A stretch of DNA of 64,000 bases from Octopus sinensis (taxonomy: Eukaryota). Position 1 is the first letter of the stretch, and each line of letters begins with the position of its first letter. The position numbers were made by a program, and so were the translations under genes. This document shows positions 1,590 through 61,604 of this stretch, one piece after another. The notes below the pieces were generated by a model, which made no database searches, had not been told where the DNA came from, and saw nothing but the letters and a program-made list of their open reading frames with translations. The stretch spans positions 17,732,001 through 17,796,000 of the forward strand of contig NC_043024.1 in assembly GCF_006345805.1 (NCBI RefSeq), given 5' to 3'.

Positions 1590-2731
1590 ATCATCATCAT
1601 CATCATCATCATCGTTTAGCGTCCGTTTTCCATGCTAGCATGGGTTGGACGGGTCAACTGGGGTCTGTGAATCTGGAAGGCTTCGTCAGGCCCAGTCAGA
1701 TCTGGCAGTGTTTCTACGGCTGGATGCCCTTCCTAACGCCAACCACTCCGCGAGTGTAGTGGGTGTTTTTTACGTGCCACCTGCACAGGTGCCAGACAGA
1801 GCTGGCGAACGGCCACGAACGGATGGTGCTTTTACGTGTCACCGGCACGGGGCCAGGCGATGCTGGCAACGGACACGAACGGATGGTGCTTTTACGTGCC
1901 ACCGACACGGGGCCAGACAGAGCTGGCAACTGGCCACGAACGGACGGTGCTTTTACGTGTCACCGGCATGGGGGCCAGCCGAGGCTGGCAACGGACGCGA
2001 ACGGATGGTGCTTTTACGTGCCACCGACACGGTTGCCAGACAGAGCTGGCAAACAGCTACGAGCGGACGGTGCTTTTACGTGTCACCGGCACGGGGGCCA
2101 GCCGAGGCTGGCAACGGACGCGAACAGATGGTGCTTTTACGTGCCACCGACACGGTTGCCAGACAGAGCTGGCAAACGGTCACGAGCGGACGGTGCTTTT
2201 ACGTGTCACCGGCACGGGGGCCAGCCGAGGCTGGCAACAGACACGGACGGATGGTGCTTTTACGTGCCACCGACACGGGGCCAGACAGAGCTGGCAAACG
2301 GCCACGAACGGATGGTGCTTTTACGTGCCACCGACACGGGGCCAGACAGCTGGCCAACGGCCACGAACGGATGGTGCTTTTACGTGCCACCGACACGGGG
2401 CCAGGCAGAGCTGGCAAATGGCCATGAGCGAATGGTGCTTTTACGTATCACCGGCACGGGTGCCAGACGAGGCTGACAGCGGACACGAACAGATGGGTCA
2501 CTTAACCCCTGCTTTCTGATATATGATTTGATTTTGATTGTTCTCACTGGTCTTGCCGGGTCTTCTCACGCACAGCATACTTCCATAGGTCTTGGTCTCT
2601 GGTCATTTCCTTGGTGAGACCTAGAGTTCGAAGGTCGTGCTTCACCACCTTGACCCAGGTTTTTCCTGGGTCTACCTCTTCCACAGGTCCCCTCAACTGC
2701 CAGGGTGTGGCACTTTTTCACACCCTGGCAG
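1590..2731 (-). mobile_element. 5'-truncated RTE copy: ORF C-terminus, 3' UTR with 12 tandem ~61-bp units, (GAT)n tail
   Basis: 2720-2544 reads VKKCHTLAVEGTCGRGRPRK/TWVKVVKHDLRTLGLTKEMTRDQDLWKYAVREKTRQDQ* (one frameshift); UTR has AGGAAGGGCATCCAGC; tail is (ATC)n on + at 1590-1613. Confidence 0.9.
1761..2490. repeat. Minisatellite, 12 x ~60-63 bp with two alternating variants
   Basis: GGTGCTTTTACGT recurs at ~1825, 1885, 1946, 2007, 2069, 2130, 2192, 2253, 2314, 2373 and 2434, plus a variant at 1761. Confidence 0.95.
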
Positions 2732-2752
2732 GTATGTATGTATGTATGTATG

Positions 2753-20372: not shown

Positions 20373-20533
20373 GCATATATACGATAGGCTTCTTTCAGTT
20401 TCCATCTACAAATCCAGTCACAAGGGTTTGGTCGGCCCGAGGCTATAGTAGAAGACACTTGCCCAAGGTGTCACACAGTGGGACTGAACCCAGAACCATG
20501 TGGTTCGTGAGCAAGCTACTTACCACACAGCCA
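20160..20533 (-). mobile_element. SINE family A
   Basis: Reverse-strand tail, hinge and head. Confidence 0.88.
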
Positions 20534-20544
20534 ACTTTCTCCAA

Positions 20545-20790: not shown

Positions 20791-21029
20791 TGATTTTCTA
20801 ATGTACCGTAAACTATTTACAATTTTTGTGGTGCCCACCCTTTCCTCAATGCCCTAAGCACATACTTTGCTTAAGGGTTGACCCAGTGTTGCATCCAGCT
20901 GTAGAAAGCAAGCCAAACAGACTGGAGCTGGCTTATGAGTTCCAGTCAAACTGTCCAGCACATGCCAGCATGGAAAACAGCCACTAAAAGATGATGATGG
21001 CACAAGCACGTGCACGTATGAGTTTATGG

Positions 21030-21410
21030 AATATAAAGAAATTGGGAGTATACAAAAATAAAGCATTGAACAAGGAGTTTGATGGTTGTTATACAAGGAT
21101 GCTTAGAGTGGCATTCAATGTCTCCTGGAAGAGTCATACAACAAACGCTGACTTACACCAGGGACTACCAAAAGTAACATTGAAGATACAGCATAGAAGG
21201 ATGAGGCCAGCTGGACACTGCATCAGTCACACCAATGAAATTGTCAGTAAGTTAGTGCTCTGGCAACCAATGAAAGGAAGAACCAGGACAGGAAGGAGGA
21301 AGATGACCTGTATCAACAACTTTCTGAAGGATTTTATTATGGAAGGGGTACAGGAGCTGAGGACCATTATGGAAGATCGAGATGAATAGGAAAGGATGTG
21401 TGGAAACAGT
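21030..21410 (+). mobile_element. Second RTE-like family, ORF C-terminal fragment
   Basis: EFDGCYTRMLRVAFNVSWKSHTTN..RRMRPAGHC..LVLWQP..GR..MEDRD (ORF 20991..21389). Confidence 0.8.
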
Positions 21411-33486: not shown

Positions 33487-34165
33487 AAAGTTTTTTAGGA
33501 CGAATATAAGACCTATATCCACGTAGCAGAAAGATCGCCTAAAAGTGTATATAGATATTTAAATGTATTTATATATTCATCTATACACAGATGTATGTAT
33601 AATGTGTGTATATATTTCCATAGAGGTAACCTTTCACTCCATACAAAGTTTTTTAGGACGAATATAACATCTAAAGTATATACAAGTAGCAGAAAGATCG
33701 CCCAAAAGTGTATATAGATATTTAAATGTATTTATATATTCATCTATACACAGATGTATGTATAACGTGTGTGTATATATTTCTATAGACGAACCATTCA
33801 CATTCACTCCCGCAAAAGTTTTTTAGGACGAAAATAAGATCTAAAGTTATCTCTAAGTAGCACAAAGATCGCCCAAAAGTGTATATAGATATATAAATGT
33901 ATTTATATATTCATCTATGCACACATGTATGTATAACGTGTGTGTATATATTTCCATAGAGGTAACCATTCACTCCATACAAAGTTTTTTAGGACGAAAA
34001 TAAGATCTAAAGTTATCTCTAAGAAACAGAAAGATCGCCCAAAAGTGTATATAGATATTTAAATGCATTTATATATTCATCTATACACACATGTATGTAT
34101 AATGTGCATGTATATATTTCCATAGAGGTAACCATTCAATCCATACAAAGTTTTTTAGGACGAAA
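33487..34165. repeat. ~165-bp tandem repeat inside the Helitron (4 units plus the start of a fifth)
   Basis: AAAGTTTTTTAGGACGAA at ~33487, 33645, 33815, 33981 and 34147. Confidence 0.93.
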
Positions 34166-34412: not shown

Positions 34413-34934
34413 ATGCGTGCTCATATGCGACGTAATATCACATCAGCAGCATTTCCTCACACCCTCCTTGCACTTGGCGAAGGCAAAATACCAGGGGATG
34501 AAAATGGTAATATTGCCATCGATTCCATTTGTACCATTGTTAAGACGCCTTCTGATCTCAGAGATGCAGTGTTCCCAGATCTACAAGCTAATTATCAGAA
34601 TATGGATTGGATTGGCAAAAAGGCTATACTGGCCCCGAGGAATAAAACTGTTCACCATATTAATGATGAAATGCTAAAACTCATTCCTGGGGAAGTCTAT
34701 GTATATCAGTCTATCGATACAACTCCTGACCCAGAGGACGTCATCAACTATCCAATAGAGGTACTCAATTCCTTTGAGCACCCCGGACTACCACCACATT
34801 TTCTCAAACTTAAAGTTGGTGCCCCTATAATGCTCATCAGAAATTTGGTTCCCCCAAAACAATGCAATGGCACACGCTTGATTGTTAAGTCCTTATCTCC
34901 CACCGTAAACTTATATCAATATTTGCCTGAATAA
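34413..34934 (+). pseudogene. Helitron RepHel PIF1-type helicase fragment
   Basis: AILAPRN..V..IN..L..IPG..Y.SID; E.LNS....GLPPH.LKLKVGAPIMLIRNL.PP..CNGTRL. Confidence 0.92.
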
Positions 34935-35479: not shown

Positions 35480-35792
35480 AAGGCACTTGGCTCAGTGGTT
35501 AGAGCATAGAGCTTGCGATCGTGAGGTTGTGAGTTCGATTCCCGGGCTGCATGTTGTGTTCTTGAGCAAGACACTTTATTTTACGTTGCTCCAGTTAACT
35601 CAGCTGTAGAAATGAGTTGCAACATCGCAGGTGCCAAGCTTTATCAGCCCCTTAGCCTTTCCCTTGGATAGCATCAGTGGTGTGGAGAGGGGAGGCTGGT
35701 ATGCTGGTCTTCCACAAACAATCTTGCCCTGACTTGTGCCTCGAAGGGTAACTTTCTAGGTGCAACCCATGGTCATTCATGACCGAAGGGGG
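35478..35792 (+). mobile_element. tRNA-headed SINE with an E-type central domain and a different tail
   Basis: TGGCTCAGTGG and GAGTTCGATTCCC boxes; TTCTTGAGCAAGACACTTTAT..ACTCAGCTG as in 16812-17120; tail unrelated. Confidence 0.8.
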
Positions 35793-35802
35793 TCTCCTCC
35801 TC

Positions 35803-36040: not shown

Positions 36041-39000
36041 ATGAAGAAGTGCTGAATTCTTAAAGTGGATGGAACTCATGGAAGAGAGAGACCCAGAAAG
36101 ACATGGGACAGAGTGCTGAATGCTGATCTCAAGATGCTGAGCTTTACAAAGGTGATGACAAAGGATCGAGATATCTGGCATGTTGCTGTAATCAAAAAGA
36201 TCCATTCACTATGGCAGAATTGATATCCTAAACCACTTTTGGTTAGTACTCCTCTCCCAGCTGAAAGAATCTTTGTCTTGAAAGTTATTCAGTGACTCTG
36301 CTGGTGCCCGTCCCACATAAAGAAACACTGATAATGGTGCTATGTAAAAAGCACTGGTGCTTGTGCCACATAAAAAGCACTGGTACCTGGTGCCATGTAA
36401 AAAGCACTGGTACCTGGTGCCATGTAAAAAGCACTGGTACCAGGTGCCATGTAAAAAGCACTGGTACCTGGTTGCCATGTAAAAAGCACTGATGCTTGTG
36501 CCACATAAAAAGCACTGGTACTGGTGCCATGTAAAAAGCACTGATGCTTGTGCCACATAAAAAGCACTGTACTGGTGCCATGTAAAAAGCACTGGTACCT
36601 GGTGCCATGTAAAAAGCACCGGTACCTGGTGCCATGTAAAAAGCACTGATGCTTGTGCCACAAAAAAGCACTGGTACCTGGTGCCATGTAAAAAGCACTG
36701 ATGCTTGTGCCACATAAAAAGCACTGGTACTGGTGCCATGTAAAAAGCACTGGTACCTGGTGCCATGTAAAAAGCACTGGTACCTGGTGCCATGTAAAAA
36801 GCACCTGGTACCTGGTGCCATGGAAAAGCAAGATGATGCTTGTGCCACATAAAAAGCACTGGTACCTGTGTGCCATGTAAAAGCACTGATGCTTGTGCCA
36901 CATAAAAAGCACTGGTACCTGGTGCCATGTAAAAAGCACTGGTACCTGGTGCCATGTAAAAGCACTGGTACCTGGTGCCATGTAAAAAGCACTGGTACCT
37001 GGTGCCATGTAAAAAGCACCGGTACCTGGTGCCATGTAAAAAAGCACTGATGCTGTGCCACATAAAAAGCACTGGTACCTGGTGCCATGTAAAAAGCACT
37101 GGTGCTTGTGCCAATAAAAAGCACTGGTACCTGGTGCCATGTAAAAAGCACCGGTACCTGGTGCCATGTAAAAAGCACTGATGCTTGTGCCACATAAAAA
37201 GCACTGGTACCTGGTGCCATGTAAAAAGCACTGGTGCTTGTTCCACATAAAAAGCACTGGTACCTGGTGCCATGTAAAAAGCACTGGTGCTTGTGCCACA
37301 TAAAAAGCACTGGTACCTGGTGCCATGTAAAAAGCACCGGTACCTGGTGCCATGTAAAAAGCACTGATGCTTGTGCCACATAAAAAGCACTGGTACCTGG
37401 TGCCATGTAAAAAGCACTGGTGCTTGTGCCACATAAAAAGCACTGGTACCTGGTGCCATGTAAAAAGCACTGATGCTTGTGCCACATAAAAGCACTGGTA
37501 CCGGTGCCATGTAAAAAAGCACTGGTACCTGGTGCCATGTTAAAAAGCACTGGTGCTTGTGCCACATAAAAAGCACTGGTACCTGGTGCCATGTAAAAAG
37601 CACTGGTACCTGGTGCCATGTAAAAAGCACTGATGCTTGTGCCACATAAAAAGCACTGGTACCTGGTGCCATGTAAAAAGCACTGGTGCTTGTTCCACAT
37701 AAAAGCACTGGTACCTGGTGCCATGTAAAAAGCACTGGTGCTTGTGCCACATAAAAAGCACTGGTACCTGGTGCCATGTAAAAAGCACCGGTACCTGGTG
37801 CCATGTAAAAAGCACTGATGCTTGTGCCACATAAAAAGCACTGGTACCTGGTGCCATGTAAAAAGCACTGGTGCTTGTGCCACATAAAAAGCACTGGTAC
37901 CTGGTGCCATGTAAAAAGCACCGGTACCTGGTGCCATGTAAAAAGCACTGATGCTTGTGCCACATAAAAAGCACTGGTACCTGGTGCCACATAAAAAGCA
38001 CTGGTACCTTGTGCCACATAAAAAGCACTGGTACCTGGTTCCACATAAAAAGCACTGGTACCTGGTGCCATGTAAAAAGCACTGGTGCTTGTGCCACATA
38101 AAAAGCACTGGTACCTGGTGCCATGTAAAAAGCACTGGTGCTTGTGCCACATAAAAAGCACTGGTACCTGGTGCCATGTAAAAAGCACTGGTGCTTGTGC
38201 CACATAAAAAGCACTGGTACCTGGTGCCACATAAAAAGAACTGTACCTGGTGCCACATAAAAAGCACTGGTACCTGGTGCCATGTAAAAAGCACTGGTAC
38301 ATGGTGCCATGTAAAAAGCACTGGTGCTTGTGCCACATAAAAAGCACTGGTACCTGGTGCCATGTAAAAAGCACTGGTGCTTGTGCCACATAAAAAGCAC
38401 TGGTACTGGTGCCATGTAAAAAGCACTGGTGCTGTGCCACATAAAAAGCACTGGTACCTGGTGCCATGTAAAAAGCACTGGTGCTTGTGCCACATAAAAA
38501 GCACTGGTACCTGGTGCCATGTAAAAAGCACTGGTGCTTGTGCCACATAAAAAGCACTGGTACCTGGTGCCATGTAAAAAGCACTGGTGCTTGTGCCACA
38601 TAAAAAGCACTGGTACCTGGTGCCATGTAAAAAGCACTGGTGCTTGTTCCACATAAAAAGCACTGGTACCTGGTGCCACATAAAAAGCACTGGTACCTGG
38701 TGCCACATAAAAAGCACTGGTACCTGGTGCCATGTAAAAAGCACTGGTACATGGTGCCATGTAAAAAGCACTGGTGCTTGTGCCACATAAAAAGCACTGG
38801 TACCTGGTGCCATGTAAAAAGCACTGGTGCTTGTGCCACATAAAAAGCACTGGTACCTGGTGCCATGTAAAAAGCACTGGTGCTTGTGCCACATAAAAAG
38901 CACTGGTACCTGGTGCCATGTAAAAAGCACTGGTACCTGGTGCCATGTAAAAAGCACTGGTGCTTGTGCCACATAAAAAGCACTGGTACCTGGTGCCATG

Positions 39001-42000
39001 TAAAAAGCACTGGTGCTTGTGCCACATATAAAAAGCACTGGTACCTGGTGCCATGTAAAAAGCACTGGTACCTGGTGCCATGTAAAAAGCACTGGTGCTT
39101 GTGCCACATAAAAGCACTGGTACCTGGTGCCATGTAAAAAGCACTGGTGCTTGTGCCACATAAAAAGCACTGGTACCTGGTGCCATGTAAAAAGCACTGG
39201 TACCTGGTGCCATGTAAAAGCAGCACTGGTGCTTGTGCCACATAAAAAGCACTGGTACCTGGTGCCATGTAAAAAGCACTGGTACCTGGTGCCATGTAAA
39301 AAGCACTGATGCTTGTGCCAATAAAAAGCACTGGTACCTGGTGCCACATAAAAAGCACTGGTACCTGGTTCCACATATAAAAAGCACTGGTACCTGGTTC
39401 CACATAAAAGCACTGGTACCTGGTGCCATGTAAAAAAGCACTGGTGCTTGTGCCACATAAAAAGCACTGGTACTGGTGCCATGTAAAAAGCACTGGTGCT
39501 TGTGCCACATAAAAGCACTGGTACCTGGTGCCATTAAAAAGCACTGGTACATGGTGCCATGTAAAAAGCACTGGTGCTTGTGCCACATAAAAAGCACTGT
39601 ACCTGGTGCCATGTAAAAAGCACTGGTGCTTGTGCCACATAAAAAGCACTGGTACCTGGTGCCATGTAAAAAGCACTGGTGCTTGTGCCACATAAAAGCA
39701 CTGGTACCTGGTGCCATGTAAAAAGCACTGGTGCTTGTGCCACATAAAAAGCACTGGTACCTGGTGCCATGTAAAAAGCACTGGTACATGGTGCCATGTA
39801 AAAAGCACTGGTGCTTGTGCCACATAAAAAGCACTGGTACCTGGTGCCATGTAAAAAGCACTGGTGCTTGTGCCACATAAAAAGCACTGGTACCTGGTGC
39901 CATGTAAAAAGCACTGGTGCTTGTGCCACATAAAAAGCACTGGTACCTGGTGCCATGTAAAAAGCACTGGTACCTGGTGCCATGTAAAAAGCACTGGTGC
40001 TTGTGCCACATTAAAAGCACTGGTACCTGGTGCCATGTAAAAAGCACTGGTACCTGGTGCCATGTAAAAAGCACTGATGCTTGTGCCACATAAAAAGCAC
40101 TGGTACCTGGTGCCATGTAAAAAGCACTGGTGCTTGTGCCACATAAAAAGCACTGGTACCTGGTGCCATGTAAAAAGCACTGGTACCTGGTGCCATGTAA
40201 AAAGCACTGGTGCTTGTTCCACATAAAAAGCACTGGTACCTGGTGCCATGTAAAAAGCACTGGTGCTTGTTCCACATAAAAAGCACTGGTACCTGGTGCC
40301 ATGTAAAAAGCACTGAGCTTGTGCCACATAAAAAGCACGGTACCTGGTGCCATGTAAAAAGCATGCTTGTGCCACATAAAAAGCACTGGTACCTGGTGCC
40401 ATGTAAAAAGCACACCGGTACCTGGTGCCATGTAAAAAGCACTGATGCTTGTGCCACATAAAAAGCACTGGTACCTGGTGCCATGTAAAAAGCACTGGTG
40501 CTTGTTCCACATAAAAAGCACTGGTACCTGGTGCCATGTAAAAAGCATGGTGCTTGTGCCACAAAAAAGCACTGGTACCTGGTGCCATGTAAAAAGCACC
40601 GGTACCTGGTGCCATGTAAAAAGCACTGGTGCTTGTGCCACATAAAAAGCACTGGTACCTGGTGCCATGTAAAAAGCACTGGTGCTTGTTCCACATAAAA
40701 AGCACTGGTACCTGGTGCCATGTAAAAAGCACTGATGCTTGTGCCACATAAAAAGCACTGGTACCTGGTGCCATGTAAAAAGCACTGGTGCTTGTGCCAC
40801 ATAAAAAGCACTGGTACCTGGTGCCATGTAAAAAGCACCGGTACCTGGTGCCATGTAAAAAGCACTGATGCTTGTGCCACATAAAAAGCACTGGTACCTG
40901 GTGCCATGTAAAAAGCACTGGTGCTTGTTCCACATAAAAAGCACTGGTACCTGGTGCCATGTAAAAAGCACTGGGGCTTGTGCCACATAAAAAGCACTGG
41001 TACCTGGTGCCATGTAAAAAGCACCGGTACCTGGTGCCATGTAAAAAGCACTGATGCTTGTGCCACATAAAAAGCACTGGTACCTGGTGCCATGTAAAAA
41101 GCACTGGTACCTGGTGCCATGTAAAAAGCACTGATGCTTGTGCCACATAAAAAGCCTGGTACCTGGTGCCATGTAAAAAGCACTGGTGCTTGTGCCACAT
41201 AAAAAGCACTGGTACCTGGTGCCATGTAAAAAGCACTGGTACCTGGTGCCATGTAAAAAGCACTGGTGCTTGTTCCACATAAAAAGCACTGGTACCTGGT
41301 GCCATGTAAAAAGCACTGATGCTTGGCCACATAAAAAGCACTGGTACCTGGTGCCATGTAAAAAGCACTGGTACCTGGTGCCATGTAAAAAGCACTGATG
41401 CTTGTGCCACATAAAAAGCACTGGTACCTGGTGCCATGTAAAAAGCACTGGTGCTTGTTCCACATAAAAAGCACTGGTACCTGGTGCCATGTAAAATGCA
41501 CTGGTGCTTGTGCCACATAAAAAGCACTGGTACCTGGTGCCATGTAAAAAGCACCGTACCTGGTGCCATGTAAAAAGCACTGATGCTTGTGCCACATAAA
41601 AAGCACTGGTACCTGGTGCCATGTAAAAAGCACTGGTGCTTGTGCCACATAAAAAGCACTGGTACCTGGTGCCATGTAAAAAGCACCGGTACCTGGTGCC
41701 ATGTAAAAAGCACTGATGCTTGTGCCACATAAAAAGCACTGGTACCTGGTGCCACATAAAAAGCACTGGTACCTGGTGCCACATAAAAAGCACTGGTACC
41801 TGGTTCCACATACAAAGCACTGGTACCTGGTGCCATGTAAAAAGCACTGGTGCTTGTGCCACATAAAAAGCACTGGTACCTGGTGCCATGTAAAAAGCAC
41901 TGGTGCTTGTGCCACATAAAAAGCACTGGTACCTGGTGCCATGTAAAAAGCACTGGTGCTTGTGCCACATAAAAAGCACTGGTACCTGGTGCCACATAAA

Positions 42001-45000
42001 AAGCACTGGTACCTGGTGCCACATAAAAAGCACTGGTACCTGGTGCCATGTAAAAAGCACTGGTACATGGTGCCATGTAAAAAGCACTGGTGCTTGTGCC
42101 ACATAAAAAGCACTGGTACCTGGTGCCATGTAAAAAGCACTGGTACTGGTGCCACATAAAAAGCACTGGTACCTGGTGCCATGTAAAAAGCACTGGTGCT
42201 TGTGCCACATAAAAAGCCTGGTACCTGGTGCCATGTAAAAAGCACTGGTGCTTGTGCCACATAAAAAGCACTGGTACCTGGTGCCATGTAAAAAGCACTG
42301 GTACCTGGTGCCATGTAAAAAGCACTGGTGCTTGTGCCACATAAAAAGCACTGGTACCTGGTGCCATGTAAAAAGCACTGGTGCTTGTGCCACATAAAAA
42401 GCACTGGTACCTGGTGCCATGTAAAAAGCACTGGTACCTGGTGCCATGTAAAAAGCACTGGTGCTTGTGCCACATAAAAAGCACTGGTACCTGGTGCCAT
42501 GTAAAAAGCACTGGTGCTTGTGCCACATAAAAAGCACTGGTACCTGGTGCCATGTAAAAAGCACTGGTGCTTGTGCCACATAAAAAGCACTGGTACCTGG
42601 TGCCATGTAAAAAGCACTGGTGCTTGTGCCACATAAAAAGCACTGGTACTGGTGCCATGTAAAAAGCACTGGTACCTGGTGCCATGTAAAAAGCACTGGT
42701 GCTTGTGCCACATAAAAAGCACTGGTACCTGGTGCCATGTAAAAAGCACTGGTGCTTGTGCCACATAAAAAGCACTGGTACCTGGTGCCATGTAAAAAGC
42801 ACCGGTACCTGGTGCCATGTAAAAAGCACTGATGCTTGTGCCACATAAAAAGCACTGGTACCTGGTGCCATGTAAAAAGCACTGGTGCTTGTGCCACATA
42901 AAAAGCACTGGTACCTGGTGCCATGTAAAAAGCACTGATGCTTGTGCCACATAAAAAGCACTGGTACCTGGTGCCATGTAAAAAGCACTGGTGCTTGTGC
43001 CACATAAAAAGCACTGGTACCTGGTGCCATGTAAAAAGCACCGGTACCTGGTGCCATGTAAAAAGCACTGATGCTTGTGCCACATAAAAAGCACTGGTAC
43101 CTGGTGCCATGTAAAAAGCACTGGTGCTTGTTCCACATAAAAAGCACTGGTACCTGGTGCCATGTAAAAAGCACTGGTGCTTGTGCCACATAAAAAGCAC
43201 TGGTACCTGGTGCCATGTAAAAAGCACCGGTACCTGGTGCCATGTAAAAAGCACTGATGCTTGTGCCACATTAAAAGCACTGGTACCTGGTGCCATGTAA
43301 AAAGCACTGGTACCTGGTGCCATGTAAAAAGCACTGATGCTTGTGCCACATAAAAAGCACTGGTACCTGGTGCCATGTAAAAAGCACTGGTGCTTGTGCC
43401 ACATAAAAAGCACTGGTACCTGGTGCCATGTAAAAAGCACTGGTACCTGGTGCCATGTAAAAAGCACTGATGCTTGTGCCACATAAAAAGCACTGGTACC
43501 TGGTGCCATGTAAAAAGCACTGATGCTTGTGCCACATAAAAAGCACTGGTACCTGGTGCCATGTAAAAAGCACTGGTACCTGGTGCCATGTAAAAAGCAC
43601 TGATGCTTGTGCCACATAAAAAGCACTGGTACCTGGTGCCATGTAAAAAGCACTGGTGCTTGTTCCACATAAAAAGCACTGGTACCTGGTGCCATGTAAA
43701 ATGCACTGGTGCTTGTGCCACATAAAAAGCACTGGTACCTGGTGCCATGTAAAAAGCACCGGTACCTGGTGCCATGTAAAAAGCACTGATGCTTGTGCCA
43801 CATAAAAAGCACTGGTACCTGGTGCCATGTAAAAAGCACTGGTGCTTGTGCCACATAAAAAGCACTGGTACCTGGTGCCATGTAAAAAGCACCGGTACCT
43901 GGTGCCATGTAAAAAGCACTGGTGTGTGCCACATAAAAAGCACTGGTACCTGGTGCCACATAAAAAGCACTGGTACCTGGTGCCACAAAAAAGCACTGGT
44001 ACCTGGTTCCACACACATACAAAGCACTGGTACCTGGTGCCATGTAAAAAGCACTGGTACCTGGTTCCACATACAAAGCACTGGTACCTGGTGCCACATA
44101 AAAAGCACTGGTACCTGGTGCCATGTAAAAAGCACTGGTGCTTGGCCACATAAAAAGCACTGGTACCTGGTGCCATGTAAAAAGCACTGGTGCTTGTGCC
44201 ACATAAAAAGCACTGGTACCTGGTGCCACATAAAAAGCACTGGTACCTGGTGCCACATAAAAAGCACTGGTACCTGGTGCCATGTAAAAAGCACTGGTAC
44301 ATGGTGCCATGTAAAAAGCACTGGTGCTTGTGCCACATAAAAAGCACTGGTACCTGGTGCCATGTAAAAAGCACTGGTGCTTGTGCCACATAAAAAGCAC
44401 TGGTACCTGGTGCCATGTAAAAAGCACTGGTGCTTGTGCCACATAAAAAGCACTGGTACCTGGTGCCATGTAAAAAGCACTGGTGCTTGTGCCACATAAA
44501 AAGCACTGGTACCTGGTGCCATGTAAAAAGCACTGGTACCTGGTGCCATGTAAAAAGCACTGGTGCTTGTGCCACATAAAAAGCACTGGTACCTGGTGCC
44601 ATGTAAAAAGCACTGGTACCTGGTGCCATGTAAAAAGCACTGATGCTTGTGCCACATAAAAAGCACTGGTACCTGGTGCCACATAAAAAGCACTGGTACC
44701 TGGTTCCACATAAAAAGCACTGGTACCTGGTTCCACATAAAAAGCACTGGTACCTGGTGCCATGTAAAAAGCACTGGTACCTGGTGCCATGTAAAAAGCA
44801 CTGGTGCTTGTGCCACATAAAAAGCACTGGTACCTGGTGCCATGTAAAAAGCACTGGTACCTGGTGCCATGTAAAAAGCACTGGTGCTTGTGCCACATAA
44901 AAAGCACTGGTACCTGGTGCCATGTAAAAAGCACTGGTGCTTGTGCCACATAAAAAGCACTGGTACCTGGTGCCATGTAAAAAGCACTGGTACCTGGTGC

Positions 45001-46845
45001 CATGTAAAAAGCACTGGTGCTTGTGCCACATAAAAAGCACTGGTACCTGGTGCCATGTAAAAAGCACTGGTACCTGGTGCCATGTAAAAAGCACTGATGC
45101 TTGTGCCACATAAAAAGCACTGGTACCTGGTGCCACATAAAAAGCACTGGTACCTGGTTCCACATAAAAAGCACTGGTACCTGGTTCCACATAAAAAGCA
45201 CTGGTACCTGGTGCCATGTAAAAAGCACTGGTGCTTGTGCCACATAAAAAGCACTGGTACCTGGTGCCATGTAAAAAGCACTGGTGCTTGTGCCACATAA
45301 AAAGCACTGGTACCTGGTGCCATGTAAAAAGCACTGGTACATGGTGCCATGTAAAAAGCACTGGTGCTTGTGCCACATAAAAAGCACTGGTACCTGGTGC
45401 CATGTAAAAAGCACTGGTGCTTGTGCCACATAAAAAGCACTGGTACCTGGTGCCATGTAAAAAGCACTGGTGCTTGTGCCACATAAAAAGCACTGGTACC
45501 TGGTGCCATGTAAAAAGCACTGGTACATGGTGCCATGTAAAAAGCACTGGTGCTTGTGCCACATTAAAAGCACTGGTACCTGGTGCCATGTAAAAAGCAC
45601 TGGTACCTGGTGCCATGTAAAAAGCACTGGTGCTTGTGCCACATAAAAAGCACTGGTACCTGGTGCCATGTAAAAAGCACTGGTGCTTGTGCCACATAAA
45701 AAGCACTGGTACCTGGTGCCACATAAAAAGCACTGGTACCTGGTGCCACATAAAAAGCACTGGTACCTGGTGCCACATAAAAAGCACTGGTACCTGGTTC
45801 CACATAAAAAGCACTGGTACCTGGTGCCACATAAAAAGCACTGGTACCTGGTGCCATGTAAAAAGCACCGGTACCTGGTGCCATGTAAAAAGCACTGGTG
45901 CTTGTGCCACATAAAAAGCACTGGTACCTGGTGCCATGTAAAAAGCACTGGTACCTGGTGCCATGTAAAAAGCACTGGTGCTTGTGCCACATAAAAAGCA
46001 CTGGTACCTGGTGCCATGTAAAAAGCACTGGTGCTTGTGCCACATAAAAAGCACTGGTACCTGGTGCCACATAAAAAGCACTGGTACCTGGTGCCACATA
46101 AAAAGCACTGGTACCTGGTGCCACATAAAAAGCACTGGTACCTGGTGCCACATAAAAAGCACTGGTACCTGGTGCCACATAAAAAGCACTGGTACCTGGT
46201 GCCATGTAAAAAGCACCGGTACCTGGTGCCATGTAAAAAGCACTGGTGCTTGTGCCACATAAAAAGCACTGGTACCTGGTGCCATGTAAAAAGCACTGGT
46301 ACCTGGTGCCATGTAAAAAGCACTGGTGCTTGTGCCACATAAAAAGCACTGGTACCTGGTGCCATGTAAAAAGCACTGGTGCTTGTGCCACATAAAAAGC
46401 ACTGGTACCTGGTGCCACATAAAAAGCACTGGTACCTGGTGCACATAAAAAGCACTGGTACCTGGTGCCATGTAAAAAGCACTGGTACCTGGTGCCATGT
46501 AAAAAGCACTGGTGCTTGTGCCACATAAAAAGCACTGGTACCTGGTGCCATGTAAAAAGCACTGGTGCTTGTGCCACATAAAAAGCACTGGTACCTGGTG
46601 CCACATAAAAAGCACTGGTACCTGGTGCCACATAAAAAGCACTGGTACCTGGTGCCATGTAAAAAGCATGCAGCATACTCTGTAAAGTGGCTGGCACTAG
46701 AAAGGGCATCAAGCTGTAGAAACGAACCCAAAACAGACAATAAAGCCCCATGCAGCCCCTGGTCTTACCAGCTCCTGTCCAACTGAGAAACTCATTTTAG
46801 CATGGAAAATAACGATTAAATAATAATAAATGATGATGACAATGA
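36041..46845 (+). mobile_element. 5'-truncated RTE copy whose 3' UTR contains a 10.3-kb satellite
   Basis: 36041-36223 reads [43 protein letters not shown]. After the array the UTR resumes (TGTAAAGTGGCTGGCACTAGAAAGGGCATCAAGCTGTAGAAAC) and ends AGCATGGAAAA..GATGATGA. Confidence 0.9.
36346..46668. repeat. Satellite/minisatellite array of ~390 units of 27 and 26 bp
   Basis: Unit A AAAAAGCACTGGTACCTGGTGCCATGT (27 bp) and unit B AAAAAGCACTGGTGCTTGTGCCACAT (26 bp), interleaved with a few variants; unit count is length/26.6. Confidence 0.99.
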
Positions 46846-47114
46846 TGGTGCCGGCTGCAGTGGTGGCGGCAACCAAGTAGTAGTAGTAGTAGTATTTTTG
46901 TGTGTTGATGTTTCACCATATTTGCCTGAGGCAATGTGAGGCAGAAAAGCAATGACGTCATCATGTTAGCATTCTCTAGAATAAAACATCCTGAAGCTCT
47001 GCACTTTCAGAGTCCTATGGTGACAGAAGGGCATCTGGCCATAGGATGAATAGGCATCTTCCTATCACATGCCAGCAGGGATAAAAAAAAGTTTAAAGAA
47101 AGCTGATTGACATC

Positions 47115-50654: not shown

Positions 50655-50870
50655 TTTTGGTAGTAGTGTCTGCAGCGGCTGTGGTGGTGGTGGTGGTGGT
50701 GGTGGTGGTGGTGGTGGTGGTAGTAGTGTCTGCAGCGGCTGTGGTGGTGTGGTGGTGGTGGTGGTGGTGGTGGTAGTAGTGTCTGCAGCGGCTGTGGTGG
50801 TGGTGGTGGTGGTGGTGGTAGTAGTGTCTGCAGCGGCTGTGGTGGTGGTGGTGGTGGTGGTGGTAATGAA
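50655..50870. repeat. Compound minisatellite: constant 20-mer with (GGT)n spacers
   Basis: GTAGTGTCTGCAGCGGCTGT occurs four times with variable GGT runs between. Confidence 0.9.
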
Positions 50871-53631: not shown

Positions 53632-55047
53632 ATTATTGTTATTAGTGTGGAGCTGGTTTGATAGAATTGGTAGAGCACTCACAAAAATGTTGGCACTGTA
53701 TTATTCTCCTTTTTGTTCCATGGGCAAAAAACACAAAATTTGATTGTTGCCCAACAAACATTGGTCTGTTCTCTTGTTTACCACTGTGTCCAGTTTCTAA
53801 TAAAGTCTAGTTAACTGCAGGAGGGGGGGCTACGATGAAGAGACTAGAAAAGTACACAGCAAATTACAGTCAGAGAATGTAGAACACTTCATCAGCAACT
53901 CTTTATAAAATGTCTGTAACATCTTAAAACATGAATTTAATGGTTTCCATCTTCCCCCCCCCCCACACACACACCCACTCACAAAACATTGAATGTTCTC
54001 TGCTATTTACCATTAAAATGTTTCTGTGTCCATTCCACACTGAAATCATTCTTCAAATTATGGAATATTTGTGTCTGTTTGATTTTTGGAAATTATAGTC
54101 CCCAAATTAGAAATTATCTCTGCCAATAATTATGTAGGAAATTCTGGTCCACTTAACACATCTGATTCTCTGCAGAGAAATCTTCGCATTTTAACTGACT
54201 CTGTCCATCATTTTACCTAAACTAAAAATAATTTGTCCTCTTGGCATGTACAATGATTGCTTGGTCAGCACACTTTACAGACCTCACTTGCAATGGTTGG
54301 TCTTTATAGGCTGGTAAAATGTTATTATTATTATTATTATTCATAATAATAATGATGAAAACAATTTTTTGTTGTTTCTTGGTTAATCTTTTGTGACCTT
54401 AATTTTGTTAGAGCTTTCTGGATAAAAGTGAAGTGTGTTACATGTTAGGAATAAAATAATTCAAAAACCCAATCTTCAGCTACATGTCATGACTAATATT
54501 TCTGATTTCACTTTTGATGAAAATCACTGAAGATCTTATCTCTCTCTCTCTCTCTCTCTCTCCCTCCCCCTCTCTCTCTCCCTCTCTCTATCGTATGTCT
54601 TTTAGCATTTTATATCCCCCACCAAAAAAATATTAATGTGGTTGACATTAGGAAGGGCATCCAGCTGTAGAAACCATGCCAAAATAGACTGGAGTCTGGT
54701 GCAGCCCCTCAGCTTACCAGCCTTGGTCAAACTATCCAACCCATGCCAGCATGGACAATGGATGTTAAATGATGATGATAATAATGGTGATATGTTTGGA
54801 GTGGGTCTTCTTACATACTTTTGTCTACTTCATATATTATTTCTGGTAACGTCCAATGCCATAAAATGACAACAAGTAGTCACGCCATGCAGTTTATTCA
54901 TAATTTGATTCATGGCATTCTCTCTTGTCATTGCAGACATCAAGCCAAGGGGGGACACTTTACAGTTTAACACATCTTATCTTTCTAACACACTAAGTGA
55001 GTGATAAGTTATGTTGAAGAAATAAAATAACAGAAAACCAAACTGTA

Positions 55048-55361
55048 TCATCATCATAATTATCGTTTAATGTCTGCTTTCCATACTAGCATGGGTTGGA
55101 CGATTTGACTGAAGACTGGCAAACCAGTTGGCTGCCCCAGGCTCCAATCTTGATCTGGCAGACTTTCTACAGCTGGATGCCCTTACTAATACCAACCACT
55201 CCGAGAGTTAGTGGGTGCTTTTATGTGCCACCAGCATGAGGGTCAGTCAGACGGTACTGGCAACGGTCATGCTCAAATGGTGTTTTTTATGTGCCACCTG
55301 CATAGGATCCAGTCTAGCGGCACTAGCAACAACCTCACTCAAATATTTTTTCACATGCCAG
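55048..55361 (-). mobile_element. RTE 3' UTR copy with 2-3 units of the repeat-seed motif
   Basis: CTGGATGCCCTT tail; GGTGCTTTTATGTGCCACC at ~55214 and GGTGTTTTTTATGTGCCACC at ~55279; a third degenerate unit follows. Confidence 0.85.
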
Positions 55362-59334: not shown

Positions 59335-59765
59335 CACAATGGTAGTGGTGGTGGTGGTGGCGGTGGTGATGACGGAAGTAGTGGTGATTATGGTGGTGAT
59401 GATGATGATGTCATGGTGGTGGTGATGGTGATGTTTTTCTGGTGGTGGTGGTGGTGATGATGACGATGTCATGGTGGTGGTAGTGGTGATGATGATGATT
59501 GCTGGTGGTGGTGGTGGTGGTGATGATGATGATATGGTGGTGGTGGTGGTGGTGGTGGTGGTGATGATGATATGGTGGTGGTGGTGATGGTGGTGGTGAT
59601 GATGATGATATGGTGGTGATGGTGGTTGTGAAGATGATGATATGGTGGTGATGGTGGTTGTGGTAGTGGTGATGATATGGTGGTGATGGTGGTTGTGGTA
59701 GTGGTGATGATATGATGGTGATGGTGGTGATGATGATGCTTTGGTGGTGGTGGTGGTGGTGGTGA
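59335..59765. repeat. (GGT/GAT)n tract
   Basis: Direct reading. Confidence 0.95.
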
Positions 59766-60609
59766 TTTTTTTGTTTTATTATCGAAATTTATTTTTAGTA
59801 TTAGAATTTAGTTTTGCTTTCAAAATGTAATTTTGTTTCCAAAATTTATTTTTACCTTTGAAATGTATTTTCATTTTGAAAGAAATTTTTTTCCATTTTG
59901 GTAATGCTACTTTTATTTTCACAATTTGGCTTTTATTATGTACTTTTTTCCAAAAATATTCTTTTTCACCGAACGCTGCATTCACCATGTATATTTACAT
60001 GTAGCAAACAAACCAATGAGAGACATTCTACATGCTAAAATTAGCAGCTAAATGTCCCTCGTTACTTTCTACCATTTTAAAAACATAGCATGTTAAATAA
60101 TTCACACCTTATTACTCCTAAATAGAGCGGATGGTCATAACTGGAGAGGCTTTCATCATGGGGCTGCTCAATCAGGGCTAATCACCACCATCTCCACTAC
60201 TACTGCAACCAACATTTTCACCACCACCAACACTACCACCACAACCATCAACAACACTGTGAACTAGTCAAGTGCCTCTAAGTGATGTATGGCCTGCTAG
60301 AAACTACAGCTAAATCTTTCTCAATCTACTACACCCTCCCACTTTATAAAAGGAAGGACACATTATGCAGAGTTGTTATGGCATAAACACCTTAGATGAG
60401 AACTGACCTAGGGTTAATTAACAACATGTAATGAATGTAAAAGGTCAAGTTGATGACCCTTCAGATGACCAGTGAAAGGCTTGGGAATCCCCTGCAGGGG
60501 TCAAAACTGGTCCCTCTGTCATATTGCTTGACCTGCTAGAATTTCAGCCAAAGCTCCCTCAAGTTACAATCTGCCATCTAAAGCAAAAAAGGGGTCAGAC
60601 CTTGTAAAA

Positions 60610-60994: not shown

Positions 60995-61420
60995 ATAACC
61001 CTAGATGGAACACATGAAAGAGGGAGACCTAGAAAGACATGGGACAAAGTACTGAAAGACAAGTTCCACATACTGAACCTCTCAGACAAGATGACAAAGG
61101 ACCGAGATACCCAGTACTTGTTTACTCAAGAAAGCCCATCGTCCACAGCAGAAGTGTTAAGACCACCACCCCCTGGTGAAGTGGGTTGGCCTGCAAGAGT
61201 TGTGTGCCAGTACCACATAATAACCACCCATGCTGGTGCCACATTAAAAGCACCCAGCACACACTGTAAAGTGGTTGGCATTAGGAAGGGCATCCAGCTG
61301 CAGGAACTGTGCCAAATCAGATTTGAACCTGGTACAGCTCTCCTGCTTGCAAGCTCTGATCAAACTGTCTAATCCATGCCAGCATGGAAAATGGACATTA
61401 AAGGATGATGATGATGATGA
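60995..61420 (+). mobile_element. 5'-truncated RTE copy with a single seed motif
   Basis: TLDGTHERGRPRKTWDKVLKD..MTKDRD; TGCTGGTGCCACATTAAAAGCACC once at ~61231; AGGAAGGGCATCCAGCTG; (GAT)n tail. Confidence 0.88.
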
Positions 61421-61604
61421 CACCAGAAGATAGGGTGGTCATGATGGGGTTGTCTTCAACCATGTGTCTCCTAGATCTAGGGCTAGCCTACAGCTAAAGA
61501 ACAACATTAAATTATCACATCTCAAATTGTTTCTATATTCTGACTTAATTCAATAAATTTTCAGGAATTTTACCAAATTCTTTCATTTTTAATTGTTTTT
61601 ACAT

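Follow-up and report, generated by a model that had tools for sequence, protein, structure and literature searches.

A 10.3-kb tandem array at a repeat-prone site in the 3' UTR of an RTE-like LINE copy from Octopus sinensis

Tandem arrays embedded in transposable elements (TEs) seed satellites (PMC7004042, PMC12692304). In the Tat/Ogre LTR-retrotransposons of plants, satellites are derived from hypervariable tandem repeats of the 3' UTR (Macas et al. 2009; Vondrak et al. 2019, PMC7004042). Central repeats that expand into satellites are described for Tetris in Drosophila virilis and for Helitron-borne repeats in bivalves (cited in PMC7004042 and PMC12692304). A simple-repeat 3' end is typical of RTE elements (PMC2887409, PMC9115989), their tails produce microsatellite families through slippage (Tay et al. 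2010, PMC2887409), and the 3' UTR of the octopus element RTE-2_OV is largely taken up by a tandem repeat that follows the ORF directly (Petrosino et al. 2022, PMC9115989).

Here we analyse a window of 64,000 nucleotides from Octopus sinensis (contig NC_043024.1, positions 17,732,001 to 17,796,000 of the forward strand; all coordinates below are positions in this window), in which a 10.3-kb array of 26/27-bp units lies inside the 3' UTR of an old copy of a putative RTE-like LINE. To our knowledge, satellites are essentially undescribed in cephalopods, whose RTE elements attract attention. The locus is a clean, fully sequenced intermediate on the path from TE to satellite in such an animal: it keeps every stage in one place, from old flanks and degenerate units at the edge through higher-order units and macro-duplications to a young end, and the comparison of copies shows that the seed is a trait of the family, not a one-off. 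The principle that TEs give rise to satellites is already established, and in this respect the finding is confirmatory and unsurprising.

Anatomy of the array and its flanks

The main array (36335–46668, plus strand) measures 10,334 bp as assembled and was resolved by TRF into 388.7 copies with a period of 27 and 83% matches; longer periods over the same array gave 90% (period 53) and 87% (period 80). Cutting at the conserved core, a motif expected 0.01 times in the shuffled window, yielded 383 units with 56 distinct sequences, and 333 of these units were accounted for by ten common types. The 27-bp unit A (CTGGTACCTGGTGCCATGTAAAAAGCA) occurs 167 times and the 26-bp unit B (CTGGTGCTTGTGCCACATAAAAAGCA) 81 times, followed by D (31), C (27), a (17), b (12), c (10), E (8) and F (5). 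Units A and B are combined into AB (53 bp) and AAB (80 bp) higher-order units. The extent given in the earlier note, about 390 units of 26/27 bp over 10.3 kb, agrees with the TRF result, but its term 'near-identical' was too strong, as A and B differ at 5–6 positions; the one KpnI site per A unit that it named is borne out by the sequence, with 231 GGTACC sites or about one per A-type unit. The TG/CA dimorphism of A and B may represent two CpG-decay products of CACGTA, a state that is kept in two other family copies (the one at 1597–2735 and L007b from O. vulgaris) and of which no unit is left in the array. As a long head-to-tail array of homogenised monomers (rare-variant density 0.7%) the locus has the form of a satellite, and with a tandem unit of 10–100 bp and internal variant structure it has that of a minisatellite or VNTR as well. 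The minus strand of the array is free of stop codons in all frames because of the unit sequence and the 27-bp (9-codon) period, and contains spurious ORFs of up to 3066 aa. It can thus contaminate gene predictions, while masking the array as a simple tandem repeat hides its TE origin.

On a larger scale the array is roughly a three-fold macro-repeat built from a non-periodic mosaic of units. Macro-block 1 (36650–38950, plus strand), recognised by recurrent unit words, consists of a D/a/b-rich domain followed by a C/c/E-rich domain, with the D–C junction at 37950, and its best non-self partners within the array are macro-block 2 (40415–42715, plus strand; junction anchor 41715) and macro-block 3 (42635–44935, plus strand; junction anchor ~43935). 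Block 3 is closest to block 2 (J2–J3 score of 2002 versus a background of 1672 ± 51, 6.5 sd above; 95% identity between 39772–42091 and 41970–44298), indicating that this was the most recent large duplication. Pairwise identity of the macro-blocks is only about 92–95%, and exact common blocks of 200–388 bp are found at offsets of about 2.2 and 5.5 kb. Ungapped autocorrelation is blind to this long-range structure because of the 26/27-bp alternation, and gapped and anchored comparisons were used. Rare variants fall in density from 5' to 3' along the array; their load peaks in the first kb, and the final part (44335–46668, plus strand) is the most homogeneous, with two rare edits in 2.3 kb, and presumably the youngest.

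On the left, the array is preceded by the last 59 codons of a LINE ORF from a 5'-truncated copy (36044–36223, plus strand), as judged from the translation and from alignment to two related copies (L008 and L009) and to a sister copy at 60995–61430. The natural stop codon lies at 36221–36223. An in-frame TGA at 36052–36054 aligns with CAG in L008 and L009 and is therefore a real nonsense change; the same alignment ruled out that this codon lies outside the element, the homology with the sister copy starting only at 36068. The UTR spacer (36224–36297, plus strand), with a stop context (TGATATCCTAAA) common to L009, leads to two degenerate edge units, CTGCTGGTGCCCGTCCCACATAAAGAAACA and CTGATAATGGTGCTATGTAAAAAGCA (36298–36353, plus strand; direct reading), which grade into the array. 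On the right, the last unit runs directly into the conserved 3' tail of the family (46669–46822, plus strand), which is decayed here and has lost its terminal nested stem-loop, and the element ends in a simple repeat of the (AAT)n(GAT)n type (46823–46848, plus strand) with the same (GAT)n end as other copies. The right flank (46669–46848) is homologous to the tail of the sister copy (61255–61430) and to four further copies in the window. Three other copies in the window are collinear with both flanks, and the array occupies precisely the position of the motif on the 5' side of the tail, which bears out the earlier reading of ORF tail and GAT tail as the two sides of one UTR.

The flanks are old and the array is young, as the earlier note had also proposed. 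In the tail, 15 of 72 family-invariant columns are changed (21% private changes, versus 6.5–15% in five other copies), and together with the lost stem-loop and the nonsense codon this marks a decayed element. Taken against family-invariant columns rather than a subfamily consensus, the contrast between 21% in the tail and 0.7% rare variants in the array may reflect differences diagnostic of the subfamily as well as decay after insertion, and some of the rare variants are single-base indels in A-runs, possibly sequencing errors that would make the array look older.

The LINE family and its repeat-prone site

The C-terminal tail and the 3'-end architecture fit an RTE-like LINE. A profile of three window tails matched 428 proteins in an exhaustive HMMER scan, the best being a protein of Octopus vulgaris; the matches sit at the extreme C-terminus of long Exo_endo_phos+RVT_1 proteins, which are distant (plant) relatives and no full-length members of the family itself. 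The top HMMER match (P0002), an unrelated protein with a 52-aa-period repeat that accumulates partial matches, was rejected as spurious. Neither the 55-aa focal tail nor the three-tail alignment had a match in word-indexed protein searches, and no family copy with an RT domain joined to this tail was found. The GRPRKTW...DRD.W tail resembles the C-termini of BovB/RTE elements. Every complete copy ends in a simple sequence, (GAT)n or (AAT)n(GAT)n, and not in poly(A), as do RTE elements. Variable 5' truncation with a common 3' end, another RTE trait, is also seen: copies are truncated in the ORF tail (focal copy, sister copy and the copy at 1597–2735), in the repeat region (the copy starting at ~55360 and L010) or in the tail (54634 and 20880). 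The extremely short 3' UTR of RTE elements is not found here, since spacer, repeat region and 170-nt tail together span 250–700 bp even when unexpanded. The UTR of the octopus element RTE-2_OV is about 600 nt long (PMC9115989), and a short UTR may therefore not be a rule for cephalopod RTEs.

In a survey of 12 UTR-bearing family copies, scored for at least two units directly on the 5' side of the tail, nine had tandem units ending in GGTGNCAYRTAAAAGCACC at this same UTR site, seven of them firmly. The idea that the satellite was born in one copy from a single motif is not supported by this result. Even the sister copy (60995–61430, plus strand; frameshifted ORF tail, intact tail hairpin, (GAT)n), said to have the motif once, has a second, degenerate 26-bp unit just upstream of the motif, which itself was correctly placed (~61235–61254, GGTGCCACATTAAAAGCAC). 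A copy of another subfamily (1597–2735, minus strand) carries 12 units of 61 bp at this site (1768–2496), arranged as a 123-bp dimer higher-order repeat in which each unit ends in GGTG[GA]CACGTAAAAGCAC. A further copy (55045–55360, minus strand) is 5'-truncated inside the repeat region and retains two full 66-bp units and a partial one, the tail and a simple repeat. Three O. vulgaris copies (L007a, L007b and L007c) have 3–5 units at the same site, and the units at ~55215–55360 correspond position by position to those of L007a and L007c, so that the repeat region must have been inherited from a master element. Copies reduced to the tail occur on the plus strand at 54634–54789, where the copy is deeply 5'-truncated and its terminal stem has a compensatory AUCC/GGAU form, and at 20880–21000.

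An intermediate stage is seen at an unrelated locus, L010, which holds 36.6 diverged 26-bp units (about 0.95 kb) in the same register. Their consensus is identical to unit A at 22 of 26 positions, and the copy is 5'-truncated inside the array, with upstream sequence that has no homology to the element; the repeat thus moves together with its element. Only one or two units are present in the other copies most closely related to the focal subfamily (L008, L009, L015 and the sister copy), and one copy (L013) has decayed units of roughly 90 bp. Unit length follows lineage, with 26/27 bp in the focal copy and L010, 61–68 bp in the copies at 2735 and 55k and in L007a–c, and about 90 bp in L013. The repeats accordingly occupy a fixed internal site in many copies and differ in unit length and sequence between lineages, as a satellite seed does, and the one expanded array, the focal one, and the intermediate one of L010 are each still flanked by the element tail. 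That the LINE family acts as a genome-wide satellite seed, an established concept, is plausible. A protein search with the array-encoded ORF as a proxy for other arrays gave one marginal match, leading to L010, and neither this search nor the copies examined contained a second long homogeneous array. The only loci known from several sequencing runs (L015–L019 and L020–L023) have no array and are 99.8–100% identical. The exact array unit had no match in metagenome contigs, and a conserved 20-mer of the tail had six matches in metagenome and prokaryote genome contigs, all by chance and without extended homology.

The hairpins that had been predicted for the units do form (MFE: unit A, −8.1; ACCGG variant, −10.1; GTTCC variant, −1.2). 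Reading the ACCGG variant as a compensatory change is not needed, however, since GCACC is found family-wide and ACTGG can be the result of CpG-to-TpG decay. A real 48-nt stretch of the array folds like shuffled sequences (z of 0.08), and both strands of 134-nt stretches of all three arrays, folded as single-stranded DNA, reach z values of −2.3 to −2.8. We considered, and dropped, the idea that the motif contains a conserved hairpin: only the sister copy was significant (z of −2.7), the other copies were not, and covariation was absent. Overall, the folding calculations suggest a moderate hairpin propensity of the array.

Origin of the array

The data are best accounted for, with a probability of roughly 0.75, by an old, 5'-truncated RTE-like insertion that brought along a heritable UTR repeat region, which expanded after insertion to about 389 units as a neutral by-product. 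Most copies of the family carry a spot prone to repeats, and in the focal copy this spot has expanded to an extreme and been homogenised recently. The family 3' UTR is ordered as stop codon, spacer, repeat region, a conserved ~170-nt tail with a terminal nested stem-loop, and (GAT)n. The repeat region, composed of units ending in GGTGNCAYRTAAAAGCACC, is a heritable part of the element with variable copy number; some subfamilies have 1–5 units of 61–68 bp there, and another has 26-bp units numbering in the tens. The molecular mechanism, the unit number inherited at insertion and the neutrality of the outcome are inferred. After insertion, the 26/27-bp version may have been duplicated first on a small scale, which fixed AB and AAB as higher-order units, and then by unequal exchange or segmental duplication over several kb, which gave the roughly three-fold macro-repeat; the 3' end would have been homogenised last. 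Inverted repeats within the units could form single-strand hairpins in alternative registers, plausibly favouring slippage.

Most of the array length could instead have been present in the RNA template, if a master element with a very long 26/27-bp array gave rise to a copy that was truncated just upstream. L010, which starts inside its array, indicates that arrays of at least ~36 units pass through retrotransposition; the copy starting at ~55360 is likewise truncated inside the repeat region, and the focal copy, L009 and L010 have a tail indel signature in common. Yet such an origin needs reverse transcription through 10.5 kb with a stop within the next 280 nt, and the nearest copies hold so few units. 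The array is also about 30 times more homogeneous than the tail, so that the present sequence was homogenised long after insertion, and the macro-repeat and polarity suggest duplication in situ; we regard this origin as unlikely. An assembly artefact, be it the over-expansion of an array that is in truth much shorter or the concatenation of reads from several loci, has to be considered because long low-complexity arrays are error-prone in assemblies and some of the rare variants are indels of one base, as errors in long reads typically are. The 56 distinct units in a non-periodic mosaic and the macro-blocks of about 92–95% identity provide unique read anchors, and both junctions are clean, the left edge grading through degenerate units, which makes an artefact improbable.

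That the flanks come from two insertions, an array-plus-tail copy resembling L010 having inserted into, or beside, the UTR of one that was older, is very improbable. Copies truncated inside an array do exist (L010), and of all relatives L009 comes closest to the left flank, with the right flank at about the same distance from each of them. However, the divergence of the two flanks is similar, they have the same orientation and are exactly collinear with intact copies, and the array lies at the repeat site of the family, where degenerate edge units form a continuous passage from the left UTR and the final unit adjoins the tail directly. Target-primed reverse transcription does not make copies that lack the 3' end, so a further deletion would have to be assumed for the left part on its own. 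It is hardly to be expected, finally, that the array has a function, for example as a source of small RNAs, as a repeat related to chromatin or centromeres or as a structured RNA. The inverted-repeat content of the units, the stop-free minus strand and the transcription of octopus RTE elements in the brain (PMC9115989) could be taken to point that way, but Rfam gave no match, single units fold like shuffles, the stop-free strand follows from unit sequence and period, and the host element is dead. A neutral by-product is most likely, and a cellular function is not indicated. A wider view, that an octopus RTE-like subfamily has a heritable, hairpin-prone 26-bp minisatellite in its 3' UTR, which retrotransposition spreads, and that repeated local blow-ups of it are a major source of octopus satellites, is offered tentatively and may well be wrong; if true, the Ogre 3'-UTR pathway would have its counterpart in a LINE, and a layer of variable copy number would be added to a TE family reported to be active in octopus brain.

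Comparison with known systems

The minisatellite-like features of the array, namely a 10–100-bp unit, higher-order variant patterns, polarity and mosaic structure, are those of classical minisatellites and VNTRs, in which mosaic structure is attributed to unequal exchange or gene conversion. The array differs from these in being unusually long and embedded in a transposable element. With RTE microsatellites and RTE-2_OV the family shares the simple-repeat 3' end, the spreading of repeats by 3' partial copies and the slippage that is invoked. The units in those systems are 1–6 bp long and lie at or near the 3' end (RTE-2_OV being compared by its description), whereas here units of 26–68 bp are internal to the UTR, upstream of the 170-nt tail, and reach 10.3 kb at one locus. 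As in Tetris and the Helitron-borne repeats, an internal TE repeat is a dispersed seed that is occasionally amplified locally into a satellite-like array. Their carriers are DNA transposons or Helitrons, with a transposition chemistry different from that of a LINE, and their satellites are documented genome-wide and by FISH, while the focal array is known from one locus. Tat/Ogre elements likewise have short arrays at a fixed site downstream of the coding region, dispersed with the element, with unit length and sequence that differ by lineage, and now and then one of these arrays grows long and homogenised. The octopus case differs in its carrier, a non-LTR LINE of a cephalopod, and in the single expanded array that is seen, and the mechanism proposed for Ogre, strand transfer in virus-like particles, is inapplicable to target-primed reverse transcription.

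Array and enclosing element

The repeat was delimited with Tandem Repeats Finder, which returned a single array at 36335-46668 (+) with a period of 27, 388.7 copies and 83% matches; the fit was better at a period of 53 (90% matches) or 80 (87%). Cutting the array at the conserved core gave 383 units with 56 distinct sequences, 333 of the 383 falling into ten common types. The most frequent were A (27 bp, CTGGTACCTGGTGCCATGTAAAAAGCA, n=167) and B (26 bp, CTGGTGCTTGTGCCACATAAAAAGCA, n=81), followed by D (31), C (27), a (17), b (12), c (10), E (8) and F (5); an example of an A/B dimer is GGTACCTGGTGCCATGTAAAAAGCACTGGTGCTTGTGCC. Both analyses agree with the coordinates and the count of ~390 units in the earlier note, but its description of the units as near-identical is too strong, given the 5-6 positions that distinguish A from B. 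The KpnI site GGTACC is present 231 times, about once per A-type unit as had been predicted; B-type units are not cut. On the minus strand, the array (36209-46751) has long stretches that are stop-free in every frame; the resulting ORFs (2344, 3066, 1841 and 1132 aa) are a mechanical consequence of the unit sequence and of a period of 27 bp (9 codons), and can mislead gene prediction.

The left flank (36041-36223, +) translates to a LINE ORF tail of 59 aa, and the right flank (46669-46848, +) consists of the conserved 3' tail of the family, with an (AAT)n(GAT)n simple repeat at its end. The focal locus, with the array collapsed, was aligned to three window copies at 60995-61430 (+; the sister copy), 2735-1597 (-) and 55360-55045 (-). 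Both flanks were collinear with these intact copies, which bears out the proposal that the array is enclosed by the ORF tail and UTR tail of one element. The in-frame TGA at 36052-36054, reported previously, lies opposite CAG in two related copies and is thus a true nonsense change. The array is positioned exactly at the conserved motif GGTGNCAYRTAAAAGCACC, directly 5' of the ~170-nt tail; this motif (0.01 chance occurrences expected in the window) was found only in these UTRs within the window. On its left side the array is preceded by two degenerate units (36298-36353) that merge gradually into it, whereas its last unit passes directly into the tail.

Word-indexed protein searches with the ORF tails gave no match. 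An exhaustive HMMER scan, using a profile made from three window ORF tails, yielded 428 proteins at E <= 0.001, and the long matches were proteins bearing Exo_endo_phos and RVT_1 domains, aligned at their very C-terminal end. Judged from sequence, this combination is the architecture of an APE-type LINE. The best full-length match was a hypothetical protein of Octopus vulgaris (chromosome record OX597824.1, assembly GCA_951406725.2). The C-terminal motif of the ORF tail presumably fits the RTE clade; together with the (GAT)n end and the 5'-truncation pattern it makes the label 'RTE' well-founded, if not proven. RTE elements with simple repeats at the 3' end have been described (PMC2887409), and in octopus the ~600-nt 3' UTR of RTE-2_OV is mostly a tandem repeat beginning straight after the ORF (PMC9115989). 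Directly behind one of the tail-only copies of this family, at 20991-21389, begins a LINE-C-terminus-like ORF of 132 aa (…GRTRTGRRKMT…EDRDE) that belongs to a different element and has no Pfam match.

Repeat units in other family copies

The other tail matches in the window also adjoin tandem arrays. The copy at 2735-1597 (-) carries 12 units of 61 bp in 123-bp dimers, each unit ending in GGTG[GA]CACGTAAAAGCAC, and the copy at ~55360-55045 (-), which is 5'-truncated within the repeat region, has two full 66-bp units and a partial one. The repeat region of the sister copy (61200-61257, +) holds the one clear motif described earlier, but in addition a degenerate 26-bp unit. At the same UTR site, three independent copies within 20 kb of O. 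vulgaris (L007a, b and c) carry units of 42-68 bp, numbering at least 3.5, 3 and ~5. The units of L007a, L007c and the window copy at 55 kb match position by position (e.g. the unit ending TTACTGGCATGTGAAAAAA), which shows the multi-unit region to be inherited from the master element. Among further loci fetched from public assemblies, L013 has ~530 bp of decayed units at the UTR site, and L008, L009 and L015 have a single motif each. The most informative locus, L010 (Logan assembly, run SRR11869390), contains 952 bp, equal to 36.6 diverged 26-bp units, followed directly by the tail and (GAT)n; its consensus unit is in register with focal unit A and shares 22 of 26 positions with it. No homology to any element part was seen in the 348 bp preceding this array, and on the simplest reading L010 was 5'-truncated within its own array, in which case the repeats were already in the RNA template.

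Overall, at least two units were present in nine (seven firmly) of the 12 copies with both UTR and tail, and one unit in the other three; a tail indel signature is common to the focal copy, L009 and L010. These units at the same site, and the 26-bp array of L010, contradict the idea in the earlier note that a single motif at the focal locus gave rise to the 26/27-bp repeat. As far as the sequences tell, the repeat site is a family trait, and the focal locus is special for its scale and homogeneity.

In the copies nearest to the focal ORF tail, those of L009 (1281-1900) and L015 (820-1270), a C/T-rich insert of 450-650 bp in the UTR separates the stop codon from the single motif; the focal copy is without this insert, so that UTR architecture varies sharply even within the subfamily. 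Loci L015-L019 and L020-L023 represent the same two element loci, assembled from up to five Logan runs (SRR11869384/385/390/391/394). Their identity of 99.8-100% across runs indicates that the runs are probably from one species, and they would readily serve to compare L010-like arrays among individuals.

Age and growth of the array

In a six-tail alignment, 72 columns were otherwise invariant, and the focal tail had private changes at 15 of them (21%, compared with 6.5-15% for the other five tails); part of these changes may be subfamily-diagnostic differences rather than post-insertion decay. The sister copy and those at 2735 and at 54.6 kb retain the nested terminal stem-loop (GUCC..CCAUGC-NN-GCAUGG..GGAC), the last with a compensatory AUCC/GGAU version of the stem; both stems are lost in the focal copy. 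In the array, by contrast, the summed edit distance of the rare units to the nearest common type was 71 over 10,334 bp (0.7%), some of these variants possibly being sequencing errors, with 16 edits in the first kb versus 2 in the last 2.3 kb. With these two reservations, the tail changes, lost stems and low number of array edits uphold the earlier contrast between decayed flanks and a homogeneous array, and support an old element with a recently homogenised array.

The string of unit types contains AB and AAB higher-order units, and long words recur in it, such as BAaDCCcABABABCCAEBA at ~37.9, 41.7 and 43.9 kb, each time after a D/a/b-rich domain. Exact shared blocks of 200-388 bp are found at offsets of ~2.2 and ~5.5 kb. 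Macro-blocks anchored at D-C junctions (J1-J3) are one another's best partners within the array: the J2-J3 pair scored 2002, where random pairs matched in phase gave a background of 1672 +/- 51, and 39772-42091 is 95% identical to 41970-44298 (typical pairs, ~91%). The higher-order units, recurring blocks and macro-block similarity point to staged growth, in which small duplications would have fixed dimers and trimers, and multi-kb blocks would then have been duplicated about three-fold. Such a pattern is what unequal exchange would leave behind, as opposed to slippage of single units alone.

In principle, as L010 demonstrates, most of the array could have been inherited when the element inserted, but we consider this unlikely since it leaves the homogeneity, the polarity and the macro-repeats unexplained. 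An assembly artefact is less probable still: the units form a non-periodic mosaic and not a loop of identical sequence, and identity between the macro-blocks is only 92-95%. That the flanks derive from two separate insertions is very improbable, because they are collinear and in the same orientation, the array coincides with the family repeat site, and target-primed reverse transcription gives no products without the 3' end. Compared by identity with the relatives, the left flank came nearest to L009, and the right flank was about equally distant from all of them. To a function of the array, to which no evidence points, we assign the smallest probability. The data are best described by recent homogenisation within an old element.

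Folding as single-stranded DNA was assessed on both strands for 134-nt segments of three arrays (focal, 61-bp and L010), all of which folded better than shuffles (z -2.3 to -2.8). Single units and 48-nt stretches did not differ significantly from shuffles, and neither covariation in the motif nor an Rfam match was found. The longer stretches suggest a moderate hairpin potential, which could promote slippage. The pairing arithmetic of the previously proposed unit hairpin is correct, but the ACCGG variant can be read more simply as the family-wide GCACC state, with ACTGG as its CpG-to-TpG derivative. The 2735 and L007b copies retain CACGTA, and L010 likewise shows the CATGTA/CACATA dimorphism; CATGTA (A) and CACATA (B/C) may be the two possible decay products of CACGTA.

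Neighbouring repeats and known systems

The whole window is dense in TE fragments and microsatellites. A 173-aa ORF at 34413-34934 contains a Pif1 2B helicase domain (E 2.5e-15), and a short way upstream of it, at 33487-34165, there is a tandem repeat of 166 bp (4.1 copies, 89% matches); the two may belong to a Helitron-like fragment with its own tandem repeat. The region is flanked by tRNA-derived SINE-like sequences at 35500-35800 and 20380-20540, with box-B-like GAGTTCGATTCCCGG and GGGACTGAACCCAGAACC. Just past the end of the focal element, 46849-46900 (GGTGCCGGCTGCAGTGGTGGCGGC…GTAGTAGTAG) looks like the unit, 45 bp long, of an array at 50700-50865 that is rich in (GTG)n (TGGTGG…GTAGTAGTGTCTGCAGCGGCTGTGG; region 50681-50865), and a similar TGG-rich compound minisatellite occupies 59340-59766; these may be tails of another repeat family. 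In O. vulgaris, L007 16635-17923 (OX597824.1) holds seven copies of a 184-bp unit (93% identity), the consensus of which looks like a tRNA-derived SINE (…GAGTTCAAATTCCGCC…); it would be another TE-derived tandem array in octopus.

Our literature search found no description of the 26/27-bp repeat, nor of a minisatellite-bearing RTE UTR in cephalopods. Whether the focal array, known here from one locus, is to be named a satellite hinges on genome-wide abundance. Short tandem arrays embedded in TEs are dispersed as seeds, some of which expand to satellites, as described in most detail for the 3' UTR of plant Ogre retrotransposons (PMC7004042). This seed principle is summarised in a recent review with LINEs among the satellite sources (PMC12692304), and RTE elements are known microsatellite progenitors (PMC2887409). 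The focal locus is a neat, well-resolved example of this established principle rather than a surprising one.
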